A DNA stretch of 64,000 bases, taken from the NCBI GenBank assembly GCA_047495785.1, contig JBLDXI010000009.1:1860001-1924000 (forward strand). The letters are read 5' to 3'. Below, in pieces: positions 8,987-45,463 of the stretch (positions within the stretch are counted from its first letter, which is position 1; each line of letters begins with the position of its first letter). The notes under the pieces were generated by a model that saw nothing but the letters and a program-made list of their open reading frames with translations, searched no databases and was not told where the DNA came from. The stretch is from Lepidodermella squamata (taxonomy: Eukaryota; Animalia; Gastrotricha). Position numbers and translations under genes: made by a program.

Positions 8987-11900
8987 TCAGTTACCGCGGT
9001 CTTTCCGCTCCTTGTTCGCTTTCACACGACCCATCCCGGCGAGGTAAGGCGATGAAGCGATAGGGATAGCGTTATTCCCGAGGGCGGATGCAGGTACCGA
9101 AGCTATTGTTTGCCCAGCTATAACAGGATACGGAAATTGAACTTGGGTCAGCTGAAGCCGAACCGTTGGCAGAGTCATAGGCGCAAAGCTGACTTGACGC
9201 TGCAGCGTAGGAACAGCAGACTGCAGACCAGCCGCACCGGTAGCTGAGTTATTGAAGCTGTAGCGAAGCGGCTCAGCCGAGACCGGATTAGAGGCAGCCG
9301 GCTCGTCGACTACTTCGCCGTTGTTATTTGATACGCGAACTGTCGCAACTGCGGTTGATAGGGTCTGCCGGACCGTTCTAGGCCGCGGGGTGATAGTCGG
9401 CGGCTGGTTAGAGCTCATTTTCGGCGACGGCGGATTCGCCTGAGGCCGTTGGAACGGCGTTGTCGAGCTCGAATTTGATGATGAATTGTTGTTACTTGCA
9501 GCGTTATTTGAGTTGCTACTCGCATTTCCAGCTAGGCTGTTGTTAACTTTGACCGGGCTTAAACTTCGCGTCCGACGCACGGATGAGGAGCGATCAGGAA
9601 TCGGGGAGGTGTTATCTGTAAAATATTGACAAATTATGAGAGGTTAATAAAAAAGCGATTTTAACGTCATGTCACGCCCACACGCGTATTTTGTGTATAA
9701 TCAGTAGTTGGTTATTTTTAGGGGCTATAGGGAAAGGTTGTGAGAAGCCACGCTGTTAGTCTCGAAGCCAAGCTGTTGGACGATTTTAGAGACCGACCTT
9801 CGACGTAAATGACGCGGAACGGCTTGAATAGGTTGTCCACAGATCGTCCAAGTTCGATTTTCAGATTTTCCACAATCACCGGATGTGATATTAGTTCTTC
9901 ATCGTCACTAGCTGAATTGCCAATAGCTGTTTTCACCGAGCGAGTGCTAACCGGGGGCGTGTTCCACACGGGTTTTAAATTGCTATTATTGACAGTTAGA
10001 TCTTGCTTTCGCTTGACTTGCTGGCTAACCGGATCACGGGCGGGCCAATTATACGTTCGATACACTTTATTCGAGCCCAATACACTGGGAGTTCGATCCC
10101 AATTACTCGTGCTAACTTGCCGAACAGGTCCCATTGGACGATTCCCCTCTTCATTTGCGTTCATAGAGCCCGTGGCTATTCCATTCTCTTCATCACTAGT
10201 CGATGGAGCAAATGCGAAAAATTCTCGGACTGCTCCGGAAGTTTTGGAAGCGTGACTTGAGGTACTGAATTTCAGAGGCACTCGCGCTGAATTATTTCCG
10301 CTTTGACTATTATTACTATTATTATTTCCCGTTTTTGCAACGTTATTGTTAGCGTTAAAAGAAGTCCCGCGTTGAATTATTTGCTGCTGGAATCGTTGAA
10401 GTGCGGTTTTAGATTCGAAGGCAGTGTTAGGCGGCTTAGGCGACGCAAGGGCCTGTTTCAAGGTGGAATCGAGAACACTGTTTGGGCGCAAAGGTAACTT
10501 GGGCCAATTGTTATCTGATTACACAACACGCGTATAGACATGACAATAACATTTCAAGAACGCAAATTCATCTATCAGCTTTCAGCCTAATCAATGGCAT
10601 GTGTCAATAAGGGGGCTCAAGAATTTTAGGTCATTTTGTTATGAAATTCGAATCCAATGGACATGGAATTTTCAATACGATAAAAAGCTTCTTGCTGCGG
10701 ACATTATCAGCTCAAATTTCAATCGACAAACCCCTGGTTTTTGTTCAAAATTTTTCTTAATGATTTTCGCACTTACGATGCTTGTGCAACGTGGGAGCTA
10801 AATTTAGGTTTCATAAATCCCAAAATCTACTCTTCAGGTGGATAAATGTGGAAACAAACCATTAGCATCATCGGCTTCGGCCTGTGAGTCGCCAGGGCCG
10901 AAGTCGATCGTTCGCCGCTGACCGTGAAAGACGACATTGAAGCCGTTGAGGCTTCGCAACGGCATCAGTGGTTGGCCCTTTCGCGATTTATCAAAGCATT
11001 CTATAGCCAGGTTGACCGACTCGGCTACGACCCCAGGTATGACATCGGCCAACGGGCCGACATTAGTCGACAGCGATGGATTCGTGTTAACTTCAATGAG
11101 GTACACCTTCATGTTGTCGTCGATCATAAAATCGAGCCCGTACAGTTCGAAGTAGCCGACTTTTGACGCTAGCTTGTTTTTCACAGCGCTGAACATGTGC
11201 ACGACGATGCGCTGGATTTGCTTCGTCATCGTGTTGTACGCCCAATCCCGTTCGATGCCTTTGGTCGGCGCGACGTGCTCGTTGATGTACGTGTTAAACG
11301 TGTCCATGCTCCAAGCTGTGTTTTCTTTCACGTCTTTGTAGGCAGAATCTTTCTTCTGGATATATTGATTGGTCAGATGAACAGTGACTGAAAAGAAGAA
11401 TCACATTTCGAGTTTAATTTCGAAAAAAACTATTAAAATTTGACCAATAAAATTGTTCGAACGCTAAAATGATGAAAAACAGGGGCGTAACCAGGAAACC
11501 TTTTTTCTAGTTATTGTTGATCAGAATGTGAAATTATCATTTTTTCTCAAAAGAATCCAAAGTCGAAGAGTGCCGATTTTCAATAGGAAATATCGATACT
11601 ATTGGGTTTCCGAGCGAAGCGAGAAATTTTTTGACAATTTTGCAAACATTTCCTACACGTCATATGCAATTAGAGCCATTTTCTAAAGAAAATAGGCCGA
11701 AGAGGGGTTTTTGATATTTCACTTTGGTAGTTGTTAGAACAACCAAAACAACCAGCTGGTTACGCCACTGAATGAAAAAAGTGTTTACGGTCCCGGAATC
11801 CTGAAACTTGAATACTGAAAGCTCAGGAACAAGTTCGAAAAAGTTCTCTGGTCCTGGATCATCGTCAAGCCAACGAAAACTGGTTATACATCCGTTTGAC

Positions 11901-28777: not shown

Positions 28778-30752
28778 ACTAATGCAATCGAAGTGATATT
28801 GTGGCTCATCCTGAATATCGTTGTTTTGCCAATATGAAATAACAAATGTCATAACTGTGTTATGCGCACCATGTCTAGTTCACCTCAAAGTGTGATTTCG
28901 CGTGCCTGAAAGGCTGCGGTTATTTTGCCTTGTATTTAACCAATTGAAGCGTGAAAAGGTTGAAAAGTAAAGCCTGATTTTGGTTCTCACCTGTTTTTAT
29001 CTATTTCTGCACAAGCCGAATTTCATGTGGCATGGTAGGTGGCGACTGGCGATCGACCTGAAAACTGGGATAGTTTGGTCTGATACAATTGGGTTTGTTG
29101 GCCACGAATGAAATCTTCTCGAATGTATCTGCAAGTAGCAACTAGTGCTTGGGAAATGAAGCTAACGATAGGTATCAAGACGGATATTAAGAAAAACAGT
29201 GAAAAATGTGCGCAGGCAGATGAAGCAATCGTGTTCTTCCCCTTTTTTATTATCAGCTTATTATCAGCTCCGCCTGCGAGTCGTTTGCGAACATTTGATT
29301 GAAAAATTTGATTTTATTTGGACATTCTAAAGCTAGTTTCTTCAATGATTTTATTCGATGATTCTAGTCTTGCGTCGCATGCTGAAAGACGCTTATTGGA
29401 AGACCCGCCAGAACGGATAGACCCTTGTGCTGACCCATTGTTAGCTAAATCGCCGAAAGTTGCTAAAAATTAAACAGGATTTCATTATACATAGTTACGT
29501 TACTCTAATACCAAGTGGATGTAGGTAAAATGCAGATGTAAGATAAATTTCAAGTATTTTGAGTAGAATGTTTTCCAATCTGACTCAAGTAACGTAGTAA
29601 TCGCCTTCGGTTCAAGCTTTACACTTGCGCGTACAAATATCTCGTCGTGAATGTGTGTCATCTCGCACATGACACATTTCGGCACGCAGCAGCAACAAAT
29701 AGTTACATTTTCTAGCTTAATTTTCACCTCGGTTTATTTCTGATTTTATTTTTACTACTATCGCCTGTTATGGTGCTCTCCGCGCGATTACCGAGCCTCA
29801 TAGACTTCAAAATTTATGATGCAATCAACAATGTAAAAAGGCGATACAAAATTAATGGTGGAAAAGATAATATACTGCTTCTCTAAAAAGTGTGCTGGTT
29901 ATAAAAAGATTTGTAGCCGCTCCCGTGGGTCATGTGAGAGGCTCTGCTGGTTAGGTTTTGGTATGTCGCCTAGATGCCAAGCTGGGCATTTATCGGCAAG
30001 AACGTTGCGAGCGTCTTCTGACGATGGGCGAATACCGCGGACGTAGTTGATGTAGCCCGCTGTATCGAGACCTGCTGCTAAGCCATAGCGCCATAGCGTT
30101 TTATGGTATCAAGGAAGACATCCTCAATGGATTCGACTCCGGCGTAAGCGATTACGTCAATCATTTCCGTTTCGAAGGGCAGATCAAACAAGGCTCCGAA
30201 GGCAGTGGGCTTGAATTTCCAACAGTTTTAAAACAGATGAGGGCGCAAGGCAGCGAAGGGCAGGGGCTCCATAGGCAACCAAGGACTCCAGGACTGTTTT
30301 ATTAAAGAGGACACACAGGTTTTTAGGCAAAACGTGTCGCTTGGCCAGGGCGCAGAGGGCGCCAAGGCGAGGCTACAGTTTTGAGGCAATCACCGGAAAA
30401 ATTCCAAACAAATCCGCGGTAAACAAAAGACATATTAATTTAAATTGTAATGTTAAAAATTGTTTAAAACTATTTATGTGCAATAAAATTGTTAAGTTAT
30501 TTTATTGCATCATGTTCTTCACAATTGTTTCGGCAAAAATATCCGAGCGCGCGAGTTGAGTTAGGCGTCTTCTCGAGAGTTTTACCTGGAGCTTTCATCT
30601 TCTCCTTCATCCTGGTTTCGCTTTGTTTCTTCGAGAGTCGAAAGAATCTCAAAAGATCTGGAGTAGCTAGACTTTGTGCTTTGATAATCTCTACATTTCG
30701 CACCCTTTCCTTAGCTTCAATTTGTGTTATTTCATTAGTATTCGTTTATTTC

Positions 30753-31274
30753 ATGTCTAACGCCGTGATTCCGGGGGATTTTGTGCGACATGCGTTGTCC
30801 AATGGCCTTGGGCGTTATGTTTGCCAATTACAGCGGTTGACATTCCGTTTCTGCAAAGAATATTCTGGTAGCTCCGGTGTTCGTGAATACATCGAAAAAC
30901 AGTTGGTTGGATTTGCTCATCACAATCCTGGAGTTGTAGTCTACTTGTTACCTCAGCGTCATACTCGGGCTTACATAGTGGCTGAATACTTGAATGGCAA
31001 CAAAGAGGAGTTCTGTGTTGACAAAATGTCGAATGAAAACATCTCGAAATGGGTCGAATTGTTCAAGTCACGATCTGGCCAACCCATATCACGCATACGA
31101 AAGCCTTGGCTCACAAACCATCCTTCAATCCAAGGATCATGGACACCTGATCTTTCACGGCCCTCGGAGTTGAATGTTGCAAAATTTCCCAATCCCAGTC
31201 GCTCAGATGCGTTTCAACTTGAGAAGTCAGCAACTGATGTTGTTAAAGATATGTTGAACAATCTGAAAAAATGA
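30753..31274 (+). CDS. MRPL43: Mitochondrial ribosomal protein L43 (intronless)
   Basis: NGLGRYVCQLQRLTFRFCK, AEYLNG, TNHPSIQGSW; likely start at MSNAVIPG, after a TTTCATTAG acceptor. Confidence 0.93.
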   Translation: MSNAVIPGDFVRHALSNGLGRYVCQLQRLTFRFCKEYSGSSGVREYIEKQLVGFAHHNPGVVVYLLPQRHTRAYIVAEYLNGNKEEFCVDKMSNENISKWVELFKSRSGQPISRIRKPWLTNHPSIQGSWTPDLSRPSELNVAKFPNPSRSDAFQLEKSATDVVKDMLNNLKK

Positions 31275-31376
31275 TTTTCAACTTCCTCCTAGCTCTTTAT
31301 TACAAGTGCCAAAAGCAAACATCTTCATTTCTTTTTAGATTCAAGTTTAGTTTAAATTTTGTGTCAACCTTTCAAA

Positions 31377-33668
31377 ATGTACGGTCCCCAAGTCCTCGTC
31401 CTGAAAGATAAGACCAAGCGCGAATCTGGCCGTCGCGTTCAGCTCAATAATATCTCAGCCGCTAAGAATATCGCCGATGTCGTCAGGACCTGCCTCGGTC
31501 CTCAGGCTATGCTGAAGATGCTCATGGACCCTATGGGTGGCATCGTTATCACCAATGACGGCAATGCTATTCTCCGTGAAATCACCGTGCAACATCCGGC
31601 TGCCAAGTCGATGATCGAAATTGCTCGCACTCAAGATGAGGAAGTCGGTGATGGCACAACCTCAGTGATTGTTCTTGGTAAGCAATTGATTAATTTCTCA
31701 TGTTGTTTACTAAGTTGTATTGATTAGCCGGTGAGCTCCTCAGCCAATCTGAGCAATTCCTTAGCCAAAACATTCACCCCACTGTTGTGATTGCCGGTTA
31801 CCGTCATGCCCTCGATGATCTGTTGGGATATCTCGCCGACAAAGTCGCGTATGTTCTATTAATTATCAGTGATCATCTAAACCATCCTTCACAAAAAATT
31901 TCAGCTTAACCATCGATGTTAAGGATGATGCTCAAGTCACTAAGGTTGTTCGCAGCTGCATCGGCACCAAGTTTATCCACAAATGGTCTGACATGGCGTG
32001 TCAAATCGCCGTAAAAGCCGTTCGCACCGTTTATTTGGAAGAAAATGGCCGAAAGGAAGTTGACACCAAGCGATATGCTCGCATCGAAAAGCTTCCAGGT
32101 TAGTATTCAAATAATTTAAAATACTGTGGGTTACACTAATATTTAAGGTGGAAGCGTCGAAGATTCGTGTGTCTTGGATGGTGTTATGATCAATAAGGAC
32201 GTGTTGCACCCGAAGATGCGTCGTCGCATTGAAAACCCTCGAATTTTGTTGCTGGATTGCGCCCTCGAGTACAAGAAGGGAGAGTCTCAAATTGAGATGG
32301 AGTTGTCAAAGGAGGAAGATTTCACCAAGGCCCTCCAAGCCGAGGAAAACTTCATCCAGAAGGAGTGCGCTGATATTATCCGCTTCAAACCCGATCTGGT
32401 CATCACCGAGAAGGGTATCTCGGACAGTGCTATTCACTATCTGTTGCAGGCGGGCATTTCTGCCATTCGTCGCGTGAAGAAGAGCGACAATAACCGTATT
32501 GCTCGTGCCTGTGGGGCGCAAATCGTCAACCGTACCGAGGAGATTCGCGACGAAGACATCGGCAGCGGTTGCGGCCTGATGGAAATTAAGGAAATCGGCG
32601 AGGAGTTCTTCTGCTTCCTGACCCAGTGCAAGAGCCCCAAAGCTTGCACCATCATGCTTCGAGGAGCTAGCAAGGATATTCTCAACGAGGTAACTGGAGA
32701 AATTTATATACATGGTGTGAATACTAAGTGGATGGAGGTTGTGGTGATAGCTGGATTGGGAGCTGAATTTTCTTTGTAGTACGAACTTTGAGGCTTCTCG
32801 GGGTGGGCGCTGCAAAACCTTTTCGTAGACATGGTTCATTCCATTCAGCAATGCTGCTCTATCTTCCCTAGGCTAGGAAGTTTGCAGGATAAATTTGTTT
32901 TTTTGATCCTAGTTTCTCCCTTGATCAAATGAGATTACTTATTCGATTTCAAATCGCCCATACTGACCATGCATTATCGGTTGAAAATTTCCTTTAGCTT
33001 ATGAGGGCTCGAAATTCATCAATATGCAGCATATTGGAATTCAATCAGTGGAAAAGAATCCAATAATTTCTAGCAGAAATAGGATAAGTCATTGGTGGCA
33101 ATTGAACACATTTCACCAATCATCAATGGCAATATCTAATTACGATCAATTTTTGTGTTAATAGGTTGAGCGCAACTTGCAAGACGCGATGCACGCCGCG
33201 AAGAACATCATTCTGGATCCGAAACTGGTCCCCGGCGGCGGTGCCTCCGAAATGGCCCTCGCCCAGTTCTTGCAAGAGAAATCCGCCTCTATCCAGGGCG
33301 TTGAACAGTGGCCATACCTGGCTGTTGCGAAATCGCTGGAAATCATCCCGCGAACCCTGATCCAGAACTGCGGCGCGAACACGATTCGCACGCTGACAGC
33401 CCTGCGCGCTAAGCACGCAACTGCTGGCAACACAACTTTCGGCGTCAACGGAACGACCGGCGAGATCGTCGACATGAAGGAGTACGGCATCTGGGAGCCG
33501 TTGACCGTCAAGTCGCAGGTCATCAAGTCAGCCATTGAATCGGCTGTTTTGCTGCTGCGCATCGATGATCTCGTTAGTGGCACCAAGAAGCAGGCTGATA
33601 TCGACAACCCGTCGATGAAGAAGGAGGAGGAAGAGAAGCCTGAACCTGCCGGACCGGGCCAGGAGTAA
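31377..33668 (+). CDS. CCT3: T-complex protein 1 subunit gamma; exons 31377-31677, 31728-31848, 31905-32098, 32148-32689, 33165-33668
   Basis: KRESGRRVQLNNI, RTCLGPQAMLKMLMDPMGG, TQDEEVGDGTTSV, LEYKKGESQ, LLLRIDDLVSG. Confidence 0.97.
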
Positions 33669-34570
33669 AGCTAGTCCCAACAGCTAGAATCTTTTAAGGG
33701 AAGAAGCGAGAGGACAGTCGCCAAAAAAATAACTTTTTCTAGGCAATTTTTGCGTTCTTTGTGTGTGTGCGTGTTTCTGCTGCAAAAACTTAATTGTGAT
33801 AAGAAATTTTGGTCTAACCGAGACATTCTATCGAGTGATGACACAAAACAGGAAACGACCCAAAACACCCGAGTTATTAAGTTGTGTGATCATGATTCTT
33901 ATTATTACTACCGAGCACGTGTAATACAGCAAAAGCTATATATGTATGTTTATCGATAATAAAGTTGGAACGAAAAATATTATTGCATCTTGTGATGATG
34001 ATGATGAAGTTCGTTTGCAGACAACCGTGACAGCGTTGGATGAAAAATTCAATAAATTTATGACACTGCATTCGAGTCTTTTGTTAACCTCTTTTTTCTT
34101 TCAGCATAGATCGTTAAAAAAATGGTAATTCATTCAAGATTCAAGGTTGGAATTAGTTGAAGATGAGTTCGAGGCAGCGCCGTGGCTGATGCGGGGATAT
34201 CGGCAAGCTGTGTGAACAGTTTCAAATTCTTAGTTTCTTTAGTTTTTGAGATAAACTATTTCATCTCTGTTATCGGCTTAGCTGTTGGTAAATTGTGGTT
34301 GGTTTTTCGGAGTGGGAATTCTAAAAATAAGTTTGTGAAGCCGCCCTAAGCATGATTCATGCCTCGAGCAGAAAAGCGAAATCGCTCCTAAATTTTGCCG
34401 TTAATTACCTCAAGGTAGAGTTTTGTAACTTTTTGGTAAATTATCCGAGCTATTTTAAATCAGCTTAAGAGCCTTTTATTGTTAACTGGAAAACTGGCGC
34501 ATTATTTCGTCGAGATCACATAGGAAACTGAATTAAGCTTTATTTTTCTGTTTAGGCTTAATTGACGAAA

Positions 34571-37500
34571 ATGTCCGAACAAATGGATTTTTCACTCGAT
34601 ATTTCTATCAGGGAGCAGGCTCCTGAAGAGGCTAATCCAGCCGAGGAAAATGACACCAGCGGTGGCTATTTCGGTGAACTAACTGGCTATTTAAACGAAT
34701 TATTGTCCCAACCCGCGGCTGAGTTGACTATCGATCAGCTAGTTCAGCTAAGTGATTTTCTACGACAAACAAACGATGCTCTTAGATCTGGCCAGTTGGA
34801 CGAGGATATTGAAGCCATCCCTGAAATTTTCGAAATCTCAGCGCTAGGCGCTCAACTCTGCCTCGGCTTCGATCATTTGAAATCGAGTTCTTCCGAGGAA
34901 ATTTTGGCGCAATTGAAGGACATTTTCTACCTATCTAACGAATTATTCACCGGGGCCAATTCGAGTTGCGTCCAGAAAAATGTGAAAATCACTCGCTTGG
35001 GTGATATTTTCAATTTTGTGAGGGCGTCGCAAAAACTTGACGTCAAGATATTCCTTCACGCTTCGAAAACTTTCATTGCAATCATCGATAAAAATTACGA
35101 TAGAAATGACCAAAATTTTCATCCGTACGAACTCGCCGAATTTTTGCAAACCAGCGCCTTCTCTGAATTTTTGGCTGCGGAGAAGCGATCTCAAACCGCT
35201 ATTAAGGTGGTTGGCTTTATCATGCGGAATCTCGGCTTGCTATACACTAGCCAATCTGGTGTGATGTTCGGCGGTCTAAACACGGCAAATTTAGTGAAAT
35301 CTTGCCAGTTTCTGTTTGATTTGCATTCCGTGTTTTGGGAATTCTCGAAAGCTGGCGATTCCGAGCCGTTGATTGCTGCGTACAATCAATACATTTTGTC
35401 CTCGTTTTCACCGATCCTTCAATCGCTATTGGCCCACGAGGATTTTCTACCGGCATTAGTCGACCTGGGCTTGAAAGGTAATTTATTGCTTTGGTACTTT
35501 GGTGCTTTGGTGCTTTGGTATCTTTGGAATTTATTGCTGATCAGATGCAAATAAATTGAAAGTCTCCCTTAGATATCAGTTGCTTAGGAGAGCCTTTGAG
35601 TAAGGCATTAGGCCTGGGTTTAGATTGGTGTAGATTAGAGTAGAAAGCCTTGCAAGATTTGTCCTGATTTCTGTTGGCCAAAAGGATAGGTTCATAATAG
35701 GGTAAATATTTCCCATTGAAAGGGATGAGATATCAAATTTTGGATGTACACATTTTCTAAAAATCTGCTAATACATATTGAAAATATAATTTTATTTTAG
35801 AAAAACCAGTGGCAACTCAGGGAGCATTGCTGTGCCTGGTTCTCAATGTTTTCACCGTACTTATCGATACAAAAGCAATCAGCGCAACTACTCATATCGA
35901 GCCACTACTGGAGTCTTTCTTTCTCAATTACAGCGGTAAATTGAGTTACTTCAATACAGTTTTTCTGTCTAATTACTTGTATGCATGTTCTGTTCTGTCG
36001 AGTAATTTAATGATTTCTCATTACAACCATTATCAGAAAAACGCTTCCCATTCTCGATTAAACCTTTCGATTTTTCAGGCTGGTCTGCTGTAGAAAATTC
36101 AGTTCAGTTCTGGCCATGGCCTCTGGTTGGTAATCCTCCCAAAACTCAATCGGCCTATGAAACAAGCGCATTCATAATCGCTCGACTTGTCCTTCGCAGT
36201 GCTTTCGAAGAAGCGTCTCAGTTCTTCCAGTTCGAGCGGCTTCTGCTTCTGTCACTTACCGGAAAATCAGAAGAGCCGAACCCCGCGTTTAAACGCGTGT
36301 TTATCAGCGATGTTTTATGCATTATGGCGAAATCTAGCCAGCGATTATCTCTTAGATACACCCAAATTTTAGCCGATTTCGTGGCGAAAACCTCGGAAAA
36401 TGACGAAGTAGCCGCGTTTCTGGTACCAACGTTACTGCGGCGAATTTTCGACGCGATTCCTGACGATCAAAAAGCTCGAATTGTCGAACAGGCCATCGAT
36501 GAATTAGTCCGGTCTTTTCCATCGATTTCAAACGGGAAAAAGTCTGCGGGTGTTCTATCGATGAGCGAAGCCTTGAGAATGTTGGATAACTGCTCCAATG
36601 CCCTACTGAAAAATCCGTCGCAACCGATTTCATTGCTGATAACCACGATTCGATTGTTTTCTTACCTGACCTGGTGGACTTCGGCAAATCCGGATGCGTT
36701 GAAAAGTTCGAAGCAAATGTTGGAAAAGTTGACATTTTCAATGTGGCAAATTTTGTCGATGGTAGCTGTTAAAACTGAGGATAATTCGTACCATTCTTTG
36801 TTGGTTCTATTTGCACTGTCGATTTTTGAAGCGAGTCGAGCTGTGATCATTGGAATTCAGAACTACGAGGCTAGTGCTAAATTTTGGGCGGCTGCTGGCG
36901 AGTTCATCGAGCAGTCGTCAATGCCGGCGTATGTGAAGCAGCTCTTTTTATGTAAGTTTACGTAATTGGCAGGAATATTCGATTTTATTAACGTATTTTC
37001 ATTCGAAGCTTGGATGCTCAAAGTCATTGATTCGAACACGCTGGCTAACAGTCCCGGTGCTCAAAAAGTGAGTTTCACTCCTTGAAAATTGTGTAAGCAG
37101 AGTGAAAAATGACATATAATTGTTTGATACGACTAGTCGAATATTAGATAGCACTGGAACGAAATAGTTATATAGTTTTCGAGGCATGCGGTCATCCAAA
37201 ACAGCCACATTGTTGTCCAGTAGATTAAAAAAGCTCGAGAGCGCGATGTCATTAGTTAACCGATTTCAACGACTTCCACCTCATGTTCTCGACGAGGTGC
37301 CAGCTAATGGGGTGGAGAGGGCCTGCGTTAAAGTTCAGTAAAATTCAGAGCGTTATAATCGTAATCTTGAAATCCTACCAAATGGAGTGAATCGGAATTT
37401 CTAATTTCTATATCACACCCTTGAATCATCGAAGAACGCATTTTTTCATTTCCTTTTTAGGTTCTGGAGACGTGTCTGATGAAAGGATTTAGCGACAATC

Positions 37501-37682
37501 GTTTCAAGGCATCTCATGTTAGTCTTCTATCTGGCGTCGTGCTGTCGAATCTCGCTAACCGGTTGAGCCTTAAAACTGGCCCTGGCGCTGCTTTAGCCGC
37601 TAAGCTCAATCCAAAACTGCGTGCTCAAGCTGAAGCTTTCAGCAACCAACTTTTTTGCATTCCTTTTTCAAAACTTTCATGA
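34571..37682 (+). CDS. FIRRM/C1orf112 (FLIP)-like alpha-helical protein; exons 34571-35477, 35801-35935, 36079-36951, 37009-37067, 37461-37682
   Basis: In-frame spliced model. The segment FERLLLLSL...ISDVLCIMAK...RYTQILADFV...LLRRIF resembles, from memory, the conserved DAWCFLARY...LLKRLF block of C1orf112; divergent, so the assignment is tentative. Confidence 0.55.
35488..35527 (+). repeat. Short tandem repeat (CTTTGGTR)x5 at the start of intron 1 of the FIRRM-like gene
   Basis: gctttggtactttggtgctttggtgctttggtatctttgg. Confidence 0.8.
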
Positions 37683-37797
37683 GAAACTTGAATACCGCAT
37701 TTTATTGAAACCCTGAAGCTCGTTGAACAAAATTTGTATCGTTAATTGAAGTTTTACAGCCTGTGTGCAGTAGATTTATTAATGCTGTGCCTTTTGT

Positions 37798-39015
37798 ATG
37801 GAGAACGGTCATAATTCTGTGTACGCCCGTGGCAATAAGACTCAATCTGAAAGCCAATCTCTCCTCGACGATTCTCACCACGACGAAGCAGTGAGCAACG
37901 GTAACGGAAACGGCCATCACGCTAACGGAAACGGTAACGGCCACAGCTACTTGCGAAAGGCTGGTAGATCCCCGTCCAATATGCCCTCTTATTACCCGCT
38001 GAACAGCGGGCCAGTTACGCGCGGCCCGCGACGATTCCGCTGCACATTCAACTGCTGCTGTTTTGTCGTCGCTTTTCTTCTGATTGTCGGCTATGCCTTG
38101 TCTTTCCTATTCTTTCAGCCACGGCCAGGTTTGTTTAAATGAAAAATTTGATATCGCGAATTCTGCGTCCATTTGTTTAATTAATTCTAATGGTTAGAAT
38201 ATACGGTTGAGCGTCATAATGGCCGATGGCGCCGGGGCCCTATCGTCGAAATCCCGCAGCACTTCATCGATGCGCAGGAGAAAGTAGAAGTTACAGAAGG
38301 CTACGTCACGATCAGCGTCGAGAAGGTCTGCCTGCGGATTAATTTTGTAATTGCTTAGCACTTGATCGATTTGCAGAACCTGCACGCGCATGCTCTTTTC
38401 GCGCTTCCTCCTGGCAAAGCGGATGGCCGCTATGCTGTTCTCTTTCTCCATGGCGCCGCGTTCACGTCGGAAATCTGGCGGCAGATTGGATCGCTGAAAC
38501 TGGTTGCCGCGCTCGGTCTCCGCGCAATCGCTATCGACCTACCCGGGCACGGCAAAACGCCGGCCGAGAGTGATGTCCCTAGTTTTGTCGCTGACGTGGT
38601 GAAAGCGCTGAAATTGGACCGCCCTGTTATTGTCACACCCTCAAAATCAGGCACTTATGCAATGCATTACGTCATGACGCCAGACCCCGATACAGCAGAG
38701 GACAGAATTCGCGGCTTTGTACCGATCGCCCCGGTTGGTACGGGGGCCTATCACCACGGTGATTTGAATAGAATGAGTGTTCCGACTATGATTTTAATGG
38801 GGGAAAAGGATTATGACCTGGGTCGCCACGCTACTGGCGACTTGAGGGCTATGTCCAACGCTGAGCCTTTGATTATAATGGGCGCTGGTCATGCGTGTTA
38901 CGTTGAGAAGCCGGACGTATTCCATCGCTTTCTCTACAATTTCCTAGCCAATATCGACCCGGCTATTGTCGAGCCTGCATCTCAGCCACCGGTGATTCGC
39001 CCGACAGAGGGTTAA
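37798..39015 (+). CDS. ABHD14A: ABHD14-family alpha/beta hydrolase with a type II membrane anchor; exons 37798-38128, 38198-38325, 38377-39015
   Basis: VLFLHGAAFTSEIW, AIDLPGHG, TPSKSG nucleophile motif, GFVPIAPV, GAGHACY; TM segment FVVAFLLIVGYALSFLFF preceded by CCC. A versus B paralog is uncertain. Confidence 0.85.
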
Positions 39016-39507
39016 ATTGTGTCCCATTCTCATTCCATACTTTGGCAATAAAACCGAACTTGAGATCTTGAGAACACTAGTCGTCAAGTTTTACGATCTT
39101 GCGGAAACACTACACATTGAACATTTCCGTATTTATTTGGCTTGCTTCATGGACAACATTTTGATTCTCTTTTTTGAATAAAACTGCTTATTAATTGCGA
39201 CGAGTTTTAACAAAACCATGGCTTAATTTGATCTGGAAGACAGATTGCTCAGGTAAATAGGCTGCTGAAGATGGGGTGAAAGAATATCCTCTTCTTAGGT
39301 TGTTGAACGCGCACAATAGGAGGCAAAGTAAACACTTGACGCCCGTTCTTTGAGGCTTGTTGGCAAGCCTCCAGCATTGCACCGCTAAGAGCAAGTCGAA
39401 TGCATGGAAGTTCCGGGGCAGATTCTTAGAAGTGAATTAGTGTAAAAGAAACATTGACCTGGTTAGCCAAGACAGGAGACAAGAGCGAAGTCGGCTCGAA
39501 AAAGATG

Positions 39508-39905
39508 CCGTCAACTGGGGTGACTTTGACGTACCAAATTGGGGTGACTTTAGTGTACCAAAAATCAAAGATGGTAAGGTAAATACCCCGCGAGTGGGGC
39601 ACCGTTGGATAGCGTGGAGGAAATGCAGTCTGAAAAATGGCATACGATTTTAATTTTGATCAGACGGCTTCAGTCACCAAAGTTTTAATAAAAATAGGTA
39701 TCAACTTTTCGTAATTTTCCCAAAACTTCACGTGCCATTATATGGCCTTAGATGGGTTGCATTGATGTGCATTGCACACATTCAGGCTGGCCTTTCCTTG
39801 GGCTATCCAACGGTACCCTACCATGTTTGATTTTTGGTACGCCAAAGTCACCCCATTTCGGTACGTCAAAGTCACCCCACTGCCCAAAGTCACCCCAGTT
39901 GACCG
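39508..39905. mobile_element. MITE with long TIRs, Tc1/mariner-pogo-like
   Basis: ~120-bp imperfect inverted repeats starting CCGTCAACTGGGGTGACTTTG / ending CAAAGTCACCCCAGTTGACCG, with repeated GGGGTGACTTT subunits; TA on the right flank, TG on the left. Confidence 0.88.
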
Positions 39906-40519
39906 TACGTATATGAGACTGCTCTTGAACTTTATAGCGTCGTCTCTAAAACGGAAAACTCAATTTGTAGGTAATATCTTCGGGTCACTCCAAATCAATT
40001 GGACCCAAGTCCCAATCATTATATCAAAACTATTGCGATAGAGCTCGAAAAATTAGGGGGCTAACTCTTGTTACTTTTATCCACTACGTCATTGCAGAAA
40101 TCAACACCGAAAGTCGACGCTTTATCATAGCAACAGTTGCCAAGCTGCCAACTCACAGCAGGTAGGAAAGCTCGATAGGAATCCTCGCCATCCTATCTTT
40201 GTGTGAAAAAGAGCTAATAATTATGAATCATCGCTGGATTTTTTGCTTGTGATGATTCATAATTTGTGCAAAAAGATCACTCCAAGATGATCGCTATTGA
40301 ACCTTAGCCGGAAGCCGGAACCACTGAAAATGAATGAAGTGAATGAAGATCACAATTCGCCTAACGCAAACACAAACAGACACCCAGTTATTAATTCTTC
40401 ACTTTTTATTAGTTGGGTCGAATATAATTGAAACGTAAAATTATGACGAAAGAATTCAAGCATAACAAAAAATTATAAATGAAATGGTTGAACCAATGCG
40501 TTAACACTCGAATGAAAGT

Positions 40520-41895
40520 TCACATGGATGGTGGCAAGGCGGATTGGCAGCGACGAGCGTCGGCGATCTTCACCAAGTCGATGCGCATACCAACGTCGAG
40601 GCACTTTTGAAAACGACAGAACTTGCATACATTGCGAGTCTCTGAAAATTAGTCGAAAAGATAAAAACATGAAAACTAAAAATCAATGAGTAATAAATTA
40701 CCTTTAGTAATAGGGCAATTGCGGCTTTTATTGTAGCAGTCGCTGAAAGCACGTCGTTCAGGTCGGCGAGATGCGGCGTTGATGACGCGGCGACGGAAGA
40801 AATCCATGCAGGCGAAGCAGGAGATGACGCCATAATGCAAACCAGCCGGATCGGCGCCGCAAATAATGCAGATTTTGCCGTTCGACTGAGCCGTGTTCAT
40901 CAGGTGAGGAGGCGCGATTTGCAGCAGACCGGCGTTGCTATTCGAGGCGAAATTGCACGACGGGCGCTGGTGGTTGATGAGCGCGAGTGGCGAGGGTGAT
41001 TGTGGCAGTGAATTTTGAGGCGGATTAACCGGAAAGACGCCTGTAATGACAGGGCGAGTGGGCGCACCGCAAACCGGGGACGGGGTGGGCGTTGGAAACG
41101 AGGAAAACGTTGGAAACATTCCCGGAGGAGCCGGCGGGAGCATCGAGTTCGACGCCGCATTGACAGCACCGAAAGGACCCTGAATAAATGGCAGATAATC
41201 GAGAATTAAAAATAATAGAAATAACTGTTTAAAAAATTAATTTAAAAAATGGCAGGATAACAAACCTGCGAAAAATGAGGCCTGGCTGGAGGCGGCATCT
41301 GATTGTTCGAAGAGGCCAACTTCGTCGCCATCAACCGGCTCGAAGCTTCATTGAGTTGTCGCAGCAGCTCGGGGTTGACCATAAGTTGTTGAAGCGTGTG
41401 CTGGTCGAGCGGCTGGCTGCCCAGGCTTGTAATCGACGGCAGCGGCTTTTGCGCGGGCATTTGCGGGCCGTAGTTCGGGCAAAACTGGTGCGAGAACGAA
41501 GGCAAATTGGGCGCAAACGACGGAGGATGCGGTGCCATCATCGGGTAGCTGCACGGCGCTTGTTGATGCTGCGGTTGCTGCTGTTGTTGCGGTGGCGGCG
41601 GCTGTTGCAGCTGTTGTGGCTGTTGCTGGTTTTGAGGGTCTTGCTGATTTTCAGCAGCGACAAACGTTGGCGGTGTCGAAGCGCCCGATGACGAAGCGGA
41701 CGAAGAAGAAGCAGTCGAGCCTGAGTCTGAGTCACCGCCCATTTCGTCATCGGAGACGTTGTCGTAAACCGGTTCCTCGTAAAAGCCGAGCGAAGTCTTC
41801 GCGAACGGCCGCGGAGTTGATGTGTAAAACTGCCCGGTATGCGAGACATGCTCAAACATCCGAGGGTCATGTAGATAATCTTGAGGAGGATTCAT
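40520..41895 (-). CDS. Nuclear-receptor-type C4 zinc-finger protein lacking a ligand-binding domain; exons 41895-41266, 41179-40702, 40641-40520
   Basis: CIICGADPAGLHYGVISCFACMDFFRR, and after splicing [31 protein letters not shown]; stop 21 aa later; long Q/P/S-rich N-terminus; AATAAA at ~40405-40410 on the minus strand. Confidence 0.88.
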
Positions 41896-43216
41896 TTTTC
41901 TCTCTAAAATTATCAAGATGTAGATAACGCGAGATTTAATTTAAAAGTAAATGTTGAAGACGCGGTTATGGACGATGGTAGAAATTCGAAGATATTAGCC
42001 AGGTGTGTGAGACACTTGACGAGACTTTGATGGCGAGAAGGCGGCCGCGCGTCTGCAGTCAAGTGTCTCGAAGAGCCGCACACTGACTCTGATCACATGC
42101 CATCAAGTAAATTAAGCTCCACTAGTGTGGTGAGCGCACATGTCGATGAACGACGACGAGGAAAAAAGCAGAAAGTAACGAGGCTGTGACGTAGCGGCGC
42201 GACTTGACTTCAAAACCAGTCGCATGGCTGTGGCGGGAAATTGGGTTCTGTGTTATATTGCGGCTGCACGATAGAACCGTAATTGCACGCGCCGACAAAG
42301 GCCGCGTAGTAGTAGTGGCTATCAATAAAACGGGAACGGGCGGCTGTGTGCCTGGAAAGACCACCAGAAGTCTCCGCTTTGAAAACGACAAAATTATGAA
42401 AAAGATGTAAAAGTGTGGTTGCTTCTGGTGTTTAACATGACTGTCGAATGGGTCAAGTAATTATCACTGCCTCAAGATTGGTTATGTAAACAGCTTAAAT
42501 TCTGCTGTGGACTGAAAATCACCTGGATCACGAAATTAACGCGAAACGGAGACATTTTCCCTGCGATGAAGTGTTGAAATAATTTTAGGCTAGTTTCTTT
42601 CTCGACGTTGCTTTTTCTTTTCGTTTGCGTTTCGAATGAGCGAGCGCATTATTAGTGCAAATATGCCGACGCAGTTGAGGTTTTATTTCCCCAATTTTCT
42701 CGTTTTCGCGTTTAGTGAATGCTTAATTTTTGTTCACAGCCGTAAATTGTCGAACATGATCGACCCTTTTAAGGGATTGACGAGCCACTTTGAATAAACA
42801 TTGAAATCTGGCTGCTGGCTACGGCATTGTCGGCTTTTTCTTATACCTGACCTGTTGCACACGGCTGCTGGCGACACATATTGTCATATTGTTTTAACAC
42901 ACTTCTGGCTCTTGGGCGCGTGCTGCAACGTAAATTCGTTCATAAAATCTCTTTTTAAAAACGCGTGCCCTCTTTTTCAAATTTTTCATTTTAATTTCTT
43001 CACCTAGGAAATTACATGTTTTACTTTGAATAGATACATGTCCACTAACTTTGTTTTACTGTTGTTTTGTTGTTGATAGATATCGGTTCTTCCTTAGCCA
43101 ATTTATTTCTTTTAGTACCGCTTTTGCCGCCCGAGTTGAATTATGGTTGGTCAGCAATTTTTCGGTAATTTACATGCATGTCTACCCAATTTTTTTGTCA
43201 TTATTTTCAGTCTGCC

Positions 43217-45463
43217 ATGATTGCTTATGCTAACGGCGCTGGCTTGCCGTCTGGAAACACGGCCTTGTATGACACGGCCTCGAACGGCTGCCATTCGTCG
43301 TCGACATCCGGCTGCCAATCGAGCCAATCCGGCGCTGACGAGGGTGTCGAACGCTCGCGATCGAGCAGTCCGATTTCACTCGGGGCATTCAGCAATTACA
43401 TCCCTAAAAATGGCGGGCAACTCATTCGGAATCGCATTTTCGTTTGCGGATTTGGCAACAACGTGAGTCATTTTTGTCATTCTGTTATGTGTTAATTAAG
43501 CTGGGTTGGCTTCTATTAGACTGCCGAGGAAGAACTTCGCGCCTTTTTTGAGCAATACGGCAACGTTAAAGATGTCAAGGTCATTGCAGATAAGACTGGT
43601 TCATCCAAAGGGTGGGTTTTATTGCTACTCGCTATTGCAATTTTTTATCAAATTTTTTTATTGCAGTTACGGCTTTATTACCTTCGAAAGCGAAGAAGAG
43701 GCTAAGCGTATCATCAAGGAGGAGGTGTGAAATTCAGTATTAATTCTGATCGAATTTAGATTTGATTTTTTTTTTTAGCAAAATCATAACAAATTGAATT
43801 TCAAAGACCGCACGCTCAACATTGGACCGGCTGTCAAACGAGAAGTGGCTCGTAACGGCAGTCACCTGGCTGCCCAAATCAACCACGTTTTGTCCCAAGC
43901 TTCTGTCCCTGGTTTGATAATTATTTAATCCAGGTTTGGTGAAAAAAACTGTTTTCATTGTAGAGCTCACCGCCGGGCCAGCTCTGTACTATCAGTCGCC
44001 TGCCGCTTTAGCTCAGGTTCTTATGCCGAATGGATCTTGGAATCCAGCTCTGGCGGCTAGCGCTTTGGGATCTCTGAACCTGGATTCAGCTTCGGTAATC
44101 AAGTTCCATTTTATCAGACATTTTTTTAGATGAATAAATTTAAACCAGCCGGCCTTGCAATATGCCGCTTACGCCAACCAAGCTTCGTTTCAGTACGCTC
44201 TCCTTGGAGCTAATCAGCTGGTTAATTACACGTCGACGCCGATGTACACGCAAGCGCCGGCTATTGGCGCCAACGCTCCGCCCTATATTGACCAAAAGTA
44301 CGTTCAAAGTGCCATCAACGGCACGCTGAATACGGCTGAGTGCTTTGCTGCCAACAACAACCAGCAGGTTCAGAACCAGCACATGCAGGCCGCCCAGGCG
44401 GTTTACAGCTCGGGTTACTACGCGCACCCGTCGTATTCGAACATTTACGCCGCTAGTGGCGCCGTTCCGCCGTCCAGCGAACTCATGTACTACAATCGGT
44501 CAATGGGCTACCAGGCGCCGTCACAGGCCGCTTCGTTGTCGTCGCTGTCATCGTCGGTCGACTCGAGCTACCCAATGCCTAATAACCCAGATCAGCAGCA
44601 GCAACAACATCAGCTCCAAATCGATAGCAACGGCAACATGCAGAATTGCTACAAAGTTGGCATGAACGATGAATCGGATATCAGCCAAACTATGTCGGCG
44701 CTGACTCTTGGCAACCAGCAAAACCAGGGTAGCGAAGGACACATGCCGGCTGATAACGGCTGCGGCGATGCTCAAAACGCATATCAGGTAATTTTAAATT
44801 TTGCTGGAATGAGCATACATATTACTGCGAATACTAAATCTGAAAAGGAACATATTTTTTCTTTCCGTGAAATAAAAAAGGGGAGTTGCGTAATAATAAC
44901 TAGCTGTTGCCTCACTCGAAAAAAAGCAAACGTCCTCATGGCGTGCGTCTCATCTTTTTTCAAAGAAATCAGAAATACCGTCGAGCTATTTGTGTTAACT
45001 AGACCACACTCGGATGGTTCTTGGAATCGCGTGCGGCGATTTATTTTTAGCTCTCTGTGAGCCGCTGCGTAGAGAATAAATCGCGCGTTCACCACAGCTA
45101 GCATCAAAATCTGTTGTAAAATTGATGAATAGCAACCGGTCTATGTCAAATTATTCGGTTGCCATTTGACACCTTGAATTTTATGTCAATTTTTTTTAAC
45201 AGCAGGCCTACACGTCTCAGGTTTACAACTCGATCGAGCTTGTTCAAGCGGCTGCTGCTGCTGCAGCATGGACGTACCAGCAAAACCTTCAGAACTACGC
45301 CAAGTCGATTGCTCAAAGCAGTGGAACGACGAACTTTGCGAAGGCTTCGCCACACCAAGTTCACAACCATCCTCAGCAGGTGCCCAACGCGGCCTACCTT
45401 AATAAAGTTCACGCCGTAAACTCACCTCTTAGCGCGCCTATCCGCCAGGTGGCGTACAAGTAA
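43217..45463 (+). CDS. BOLL: Boule (DAZ-family RRM protein), 7 coding exons, last intron 44788-45202
   Basis: Spliced RRM NRIFVCG...TAEEELRAFFEQYGNVKDVKVIADKTGSSKGYGFITFESEEEA...KLNFKDRTLNIGPAVKR is Boule-type; Q/Y/A-rich C-terminal tail. Confidence 0.9.

Follow-up and report, generated by a model that had tools for sequence, protein, structure and literature searches.

The 64-kb stretch of DNA analyzed here (the window) carries on its minus strand a three-exon gene whose product has a single, C-terminal DNA-binding domain (DBD) of the nuclear-receptor type, a P-box with the sequence CFACMD and no ligand-binding domain (LBD). We consider this gene to be intact and maintained by selection, and its product to be a DBD-only transcription factor of the nuclear-receptor type, which would act by binding DNA; we give this reading a probability of about 0.72. 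The features of the gene and its surroundings are listed in Table 1.

Table 1. Receptor gene, neighboring genes and repeats (positions are those of the window).
Feature	Position	Strand	Remarks
Receptor gene	41895..40522	-	3 exons, product 409 aa
Exon 1	41266..41895	-	ATG at 41895; 210 aa; N-terminal region Q/P/S-rich, mostly disordered
N-terminal motif STPRPxAKTSLGFY..DNVSDxE	41743..41820	-	Conserved between both species
Helical motif LDQxTLQQLMxNPxLLRQLNE	41308..41409	-	Invariant block compared to L001
Intron 1	41180..41265	-	GT..AG, 86 nt, 22% GC
Exon 2	40702..41179	-	478 nt (159 codons + 1 base), ends in phase 1; proline-rich spacer, zinc finger 1, P-box, 23-residue linker, D-box
zf-C4 DBD, complete	40586..40870	-	First Cys to GM, split by intron 2
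P-box / recognition-helix start CFACMDFF	40796..40819	-	Same in ortholog
Intron 2	40642..40701	-	GTAATT..TTTCAG, 60 nt; within zinc finger 2, between ITK and E-TRN
Exon 3	40522..40641	-	End of finger 2, GM, 21-residue tail, stop TGA at 40524-40522
C-terminal tail motif RRCQSALPP (RRCxSAxPP)	40529..40555	-	Conserved; synonymous changes incl. Ser TCC vs AGT
3' intergenic region	39016..40521	.	1,506 bp; without LBD-like coding capacity
Second short repeat	40204-40397	.	In 3' intergenic region
MITE-like inverted repeat	39510-39903	.	66-nt terminal arms 91% complementary; internal 24-nt direct repeats
ABHD14-like alpha/beta hydrolase gene	38362..39015	+	Convergent; Pfam Abhydrolase_6; best named matches ABHD14A/B
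DAZ/boule-like RRM gene	43190..45060	+	Divergent; start codon ~1.3 kb from receptor ATG

The gene model agrees with an earlier reading made from the sequence only, which had described a protein of approximately 410 aa with both zinc fingers complete after splicing and a stop 21 aa past the GM motif. The exons have a GC content of 53-58% compared to 22% for both introns. Only one public sequencing run was found to hold the stretch; its contigs traverse both introns and are contiguous across intron 1, and the run is therefore genomic DNA. That the gene is transcribed, where its introns are spliced and where it ends are predictions from conservation and GT-AG signals alone. Protein searches and folding of the receptor were run exon by exon.

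In both the window (approximately 41904-41909, minus strand) and the related contig L001 described below (approximately 9496-9501), a sequence resembling a 3' splice site, TTTTAG or TTTCAG, is located 7-8 nt upstream of the ATG. It could be a spliced-leader trans-splice acceptor or the end of an intron in the 5' UTR. The DNA run also showed irregularities between positions 40462 and 41249. One contig links 40485 to 41229 and skips 743 bp, with a short side of only 21 nt, single contigs diverge into unrelated sequence at 40462 and 41249, and the contig over intron 1 has a depth of 56 compared to 90-100 on the surrounding sequence. A structural variant in the heterozygous state, within intron 1 or close to it, may explain these anomalies, as may an artefact of the assembly graph in AT-rich sequence.

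An exhaustive HMMER search with exon 2 against 1.84 billion representative proteins gave only generic receptor matches, with the exception of P0004, a 177-aa ORF fragment that aligned across nearly all of exon 2. P0004 was found to be exon 2 of a gene present on four ENA metagenome contigs (L001-L004). A word-index protein search (lengths 87-278 aa) found no match to exon 2 alone, and only P0004 when a two-species profile was used. The gene on L001 has three exons, its exon 2 is exactly 478 nt with the same phase, and intron 2 interrupts the protein at the same position. Identity to the protein encoded in the window was 45% for exon 1, 37% for exon 2 and 53% for exon 3. The CFACMDFFRRRV helix is identical, and the L001 protein shares the 23-residue linker with a conserved ERRxF and the C-x6-C D-box. 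Invariant in both species are the eight zinc-binding cysteines, the HYG motif, FFRRR and a KFCR..C...GM core. Seven genes are collinear between the window and the relative, i.e., Inturned, boule, the receptor, prefoldin, CLIP1_ZNF, a KASH_CCD coiled-coil protein and a CAP-Gly protein, which supports that the L001 gene is the ortholog. The receptor gene is single-copy and is located in this conserved synteny, outside any array. With the receptor traced in two species only, the apparent conservation of CFACMD rests on one comparison.

Compared to the relative, the window has an extra block of 11.7 kb (28800-40500) between the receptor and prefoldin. It consists of plus-strand genes, encoding a mitochondrial L51/S25/CI-B8-type protein, a CCT chaperonin subunit, two ORFs without a Pfam match, and ABHD14. 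The block is either an insertion in the window or a deletion in the relative.

The protein was assigned to the nuclear receptor superfamily by the Pfam zf-C4 profile (PF00105), which matched exon 2 (E 1.8e-8, 35.2 bits, profile positions 2-42) and exon 3 (E 9.6e-6, 26.4 bits, profile positions 51-69 of 70), both above the curated cutoff of 21.1 bits. The canonical zinc-ligand spacing comprises eight cysteines in the order C-x2-C-x13-C-x2-C ... C-x5-C-x9-C-x2-C. The translations gave C-x2-C-x13-C-x2-C-x23-C-x6-C-x9-C-x2-C; all eight cysteines are thus present by sequence, with the spacing of finger 1 being exact and that of finger 2 being C-x6-C-x9-C-x2-C. From the exon lengths the DBD occupies residues 314-388 of 409, i.e., the C-terminal part of the protein. 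Only one in-frame C-x2-C-x13-C-x2-C receptor motif was found in the whole window, and the protein does not carry the two or more zf-C4 modules that define 2DBD and multi-DBD receptors. A PDB sequence search with the DBD part of exon 2 gave generic receptor matches (GCNF with 36 bits, LXR-beta, MR) that did not point to any one subfamily. The AlphaFold model of exon 2, made from a two-row alignment and with the DBD cut at the exon boundary, had a pLDDT of 41, which is too low to be informative.

Residues of the P-box are the classic determinants of half-site choice by nuclear receptors. The P-box is CFACMD in both species and belongs to none of the canonical classes CEGCKG, CEACKA, and CGSCKV; the Glu and Lys of the CEGCKG helix are replaced by Phe and Met. 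The sequence-only reading had pointed to the loss of these base-contacting residues from CFACMDFF, and also to an extended inter-finger linker and a C-x6-C D-box, all of which could be read from the translation, with a linker of 23 residues where 15-17 are usual. How unusual the single features are was assessed from 226 first fingers taken from the 150 best database matches. Phe was found at the first P-box position in nine of these (e.g., six with CFGCKGFF), and Met for the P-box Lys in three. Six-residue D-boxes were present in 29 of 142 related DBDs from the same matches, and the linkers were mostly of 15-17 residues, with a few at 19-30. The combination CFACMD was shared by P0004 only among the 226 first fingers. 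The search for this P-box that the earlier reading had proposed therefore returned no receptor besides P0004. The string CFACMD was also absent from the 8.4 million papers and preprints that were searched and from the supplementary files of two receptor catalogues (flatworm, 2DBD), and a JGI metagenome scan with the patterns CFACMDF and the start of finger 1 gave 147 pattern matches, none of which was confirmed.

While the CFACMD combination was found nowhere else, loss of the Glu and Lys as such is known. Approximately 196 Caenorhabditis receptors have conserved CRACAA or CKACAA P-boxes without these residues, which was interpreted as a different mode of DNA binding (PMC3908500). These receptors retain an LBD and have a basic first P-box residue, whereas the receptor described here has Phe first and Met-Asp instead of Ala-Ala. 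The FFRR pair corresponds to K160/R161 of RXR, which are conserved basic residues (PMC3908500). Outside the ortholog, the best matches were multi-DBD receptors (2DBD and higher) with P-boxes of the form xACxDFF (CKACADFF, CNACADFF) and approximately 40% identity. They differ from the receptor here, which has a single DBD and no LBD.

Some of the predicted proteins in the database have domain arrangements of their own. P0091, P0001, P0006, P0003, P0039, P0007, and P0002 contain three to six receptor first-finger motifs per chain; P0001 and P0006 have five DBDs and an LBD each, while six DBDs in P0091, four in P0007 (Argonauta hians) and three in P0002 (stick insect XP_063216918.1) occur without an LBD. 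In the literature consulted, receptors have at most two DBDs. P0105 and P0041, from Logan contigs (482 and 301 aa), have a single C-terminal DBD, end 8-10 residues past GM and show no LBD; either may be another receptor of the LBD-less kind or a truncated prediction. P0020 also has a single C-terminal DBD, but may be only a fragment since its cluster includes a PNR-like protein of 1,077 aa.

A zinc module so altered might no longer read DNA sequence. The protein would then be a co-regulator, a decoy or an RNA- or protein-binding factor that uses the zf-C4 fold as an interaction surface. The two best-known base-contacting residues of the P-box are both gone, and their replacement might just as well have weakened or abolished sequence-specific binding; further, the linker is 6-8 residues, and the D-box one residue, longer than usual. 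On the other hand, the parts of the domain that are invariant between the species include the cysteines, HYG, FFRRR, and the KFCR..C...GM core, and the DBD exons are without polymorphism. Receptors lacking both Glu and Lys are considered to be DNA-binding in Caenorhabditis (PMC3908500), and six-residue D-boxes are found in a fair number of the related DBDs. We therefore regard loss of sequence reading as unlikely, while giving it some weight.

For the DBD-only transcription factor we propose the following mode of action. The N-terminal region is long and predicted to be mostly disordered, with two conserved short motifs, one of them a predicted helix-turn-helix of a type that docks on co-regulators. 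AlphaFold, run on exon 1 with a two-row alignment, gave a mean pLDDT of 52.6 and predicted disorder except for helices at residues 165-173 and 175-196 (pLDDT 73-81), which coincide with the most conserved block of exon 1. This block, LDQxTLQQLMxNPxLLRQLNE, includes hydrophobic-x-x-hydrophobic-hydrophobic elements and may serve in activation or docking. The exon 1 region resembles a typical effector region of a transcription factor, in which short motifs would serve for docking. A search of the ESM Atlas with exon 1 gave a best score of 0.81, which is under the meaningful level.

Binding to DNA would most likely take place through the recognition helix, as a monomer or by DBD-DBD contacts only. 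Such monomeric or DBD-mediated binding is expected because the strong dimer interface is missing along with the LBD. The elements that would serve DNA binding, i.e., the eight zinc cysteines, the HYG phosphate-contact motif and the FFRR basic pair, are kept. Since Phe and Met replace the base-contacting Glu and Lys, the half-site is expected to differ from AGGTCA and AGAACA, perhaps through hydrophobic contacts of Phe and Met with the methyl groups of thymine; it is from the P-box residues only that a new DNA specificity is suggested. The short, basic RRCxSAxPP tail is a candidate C-terminal extension contacting DNA, and its RRC part may enter the minor groove as in monomeric receptors, for which this role of the extension is established. 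The protein would be unable to sense a ligand itself, and its regulation would depend on how it is expressed and on the partners that its N-terminal motifs recruit.

A more elaborate scheme is that of a split receptor, in which LQQLM/LLRQL docks in the coactivator groove of separately encoded LBD-only receptors while the Phe/Met helix reads a half-site unlike known elements. The product of one gene would then read DNA and that of another would sense the ligand, and the half-site would be read through hydrophobic contacts with the methyl groups of the bases. We consider this scheme speculative and improbable.

The DBD is N-terminal in Knirps-type receptors, and the receptor described here differs from them in having it C-terminally. 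The insect proteins Knirps, Knirps-related, and Eagle (NR0A1-3) are DBD-only receptors whose action involves no ligand pocket (PMC2225407, PMC7827873). A closer parallel is offered by ODR-7 (NR0A4), known from Caenorhabditis elegans and other nematodes, which has no LBD, a C-terminal zf-C4 DBD and an N-terminal region that is long and not conserved (PMC10698902, PMC2225407, PMC3517510). The background to the sequence-only reading, in which DBD-only receptors carry the DBD N-terminally, thus holds for the knirps family but is incomplete, as the DBD of ODR-7 is C-terminal (PMC10698902). To present the architecture as unprecedented was likewise an overstatement, since ODR-7 has the same layout (PMC10698902, PMC2225407). 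The receptor shares with ODR-7 the absence of an LBD, the carboxyl-terminal position of the DBD and the long N-terminal region. Its CFACMD P-box, 23-residue linker and C-x6-C D-box were set against ODR-7 by published layout only.

From this shared architecture (PMC10698902) one could suppose that the gene is a true ortholog of nematode ODR-7 and not an independent invention of the layout. The exon 2 search, on which the comparison of sequences is based, did not detect a specific relationship, and no protein besides P0004 rose above the receptor background or shared the P-box or the linker, with nematode proteomes present in the database. ODR-7 homologues are reported from nematodes only (PMC10698902), while the neighboring ABHD14 gene of the window is closest to molluscan proteins (47% identity), which suggests a non-nematode host. 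Orthology to ODR-7 is therefore very improbable.

The DBD-only receptor described here would then be a second, apparently independent case of the ODR-7-type layout, outside nematodes, and suggests that lineages with growing receptor repertoires have repeatedly lost the LBD while keeping a stand-alone DBD. The DBD-only layout of the ODR-7 type is known and the CFACMD P-box, unreported elsewhere, is new; the receptor does not represent a new category of system. A natural DBD with a whole zinc scaffold but with Phe and Met for Glu and Lys, selected in two distant species, offers a clean test of the range of the recognition code.

No LBD was found in the gene or at either locus, in keeping with the ligand independence proposed in the sequence-only reading, and the protein must therefore act without a ligand pocket of its own. 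By having a DBD and no LBD it belongs with NR0A and not with the canonical receptors, which have both; NR0A is an architectural grouping and not a clade. In both species the frame continues after GM through RRCxSAxPP to a stop, a distance of 21-34 residues. The tail motif is kept by synonymous codons, which indicates that this frame is probably translated and under selection at the protein level. For an LBD HMM, 10 LBDs were taken from the proteins with the most closely related DBDs; the HMM detected the LBDs of other receptors in the match set. Against six-frame pieces of the window and of L001-L004 it found nothing (best E 0.49), the orthologous locus covered by the search being 16.9 kb. No Pfam match was found in the downstream minus-strand pieces.

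One case that, according to the earlier reading, would overturn it is a transcript in which the VGM codons are spliced to an LBD exon. The gene would then be a canonical receptor with far LBD exons, joined from G/GTATG across the neighboring genes. The codons GGT-ATG inevitably give a site resembling a GT donor. The conserved frame of the tail argues against its use as a donor, and no LBD-like piece was found at either locus. Further, the genes that follow downstream are not the same in the two species, and in both they lie on the opposite strand. In the relative, prefoldin starts 480 bp past the receptor stop in convergent orientation, with all further genes on the opposite strand, and the 11.7-kb interval from receptor to prefoldin in the window is filled by plus-strand genes only. 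The 3' intergenic region of the relative is also full of substitutions and indels, unlike the coding sequence. At the DNA level a distant LBD is therefore scarcely credible.

Selection on the gene was seen from polymorphism. The four population contigs of the relative differ at 2 of 1,122 CDS sites, whereas the 3' intergenic region has 12 variable sites among 481 as well as indels (Fisher p = 2e-5); neither of the two CDS variants is located in the DBD exons. The DNA run of the window has two variants in the CDS, both in third positions and synonymous. A decaying, neutrally evolving remnant of a duplicated receptor, another outcome that the earlier reading had considered fatal to it, can practically be dismissed, since the ORF and three-exon structure are intact in two species at only approximately 40% protein identity, CDS polymorphism is depleted and the gene is single-copy in conserved synteny outside any array. 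We conclude that the gene is real and kept by purifying selection, and that it is neither a pseudogene nor a prediction cut short.

The surroundings of the receptor gene were as previously described: the 3' intergenic region, given as 1.5 kb containing a MITE and no LBD-like ORF and measured here, extends to the convergent ABHD14 gene, and a divergent DAZ/boule-like RRM gene is located head-to-head with the receptor. Both repeats in the 3' intergenic region had an approximately 15-20-fold excess depth in the DNA run and are therefore multi-copy families in the genome. The boule ortholog on L001 matched RRM_1 (E 1.5e-11), with DAZL as the best single-domain PDB match. Because the order of all seven genes is likewise conserved, the adjacency to boule is no evidence of shared regulation or of a role in the germline, and a regulatory or germline link that is based on adjacency only is given no special weight. 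Rfam had no match over 38900-43300. The intergenic region between the receptor and boule contains a GC-rich segment (42040-42350), perhaps part of the 5' UTR or promoter, that carries seven of the variants seen in the DNA run.
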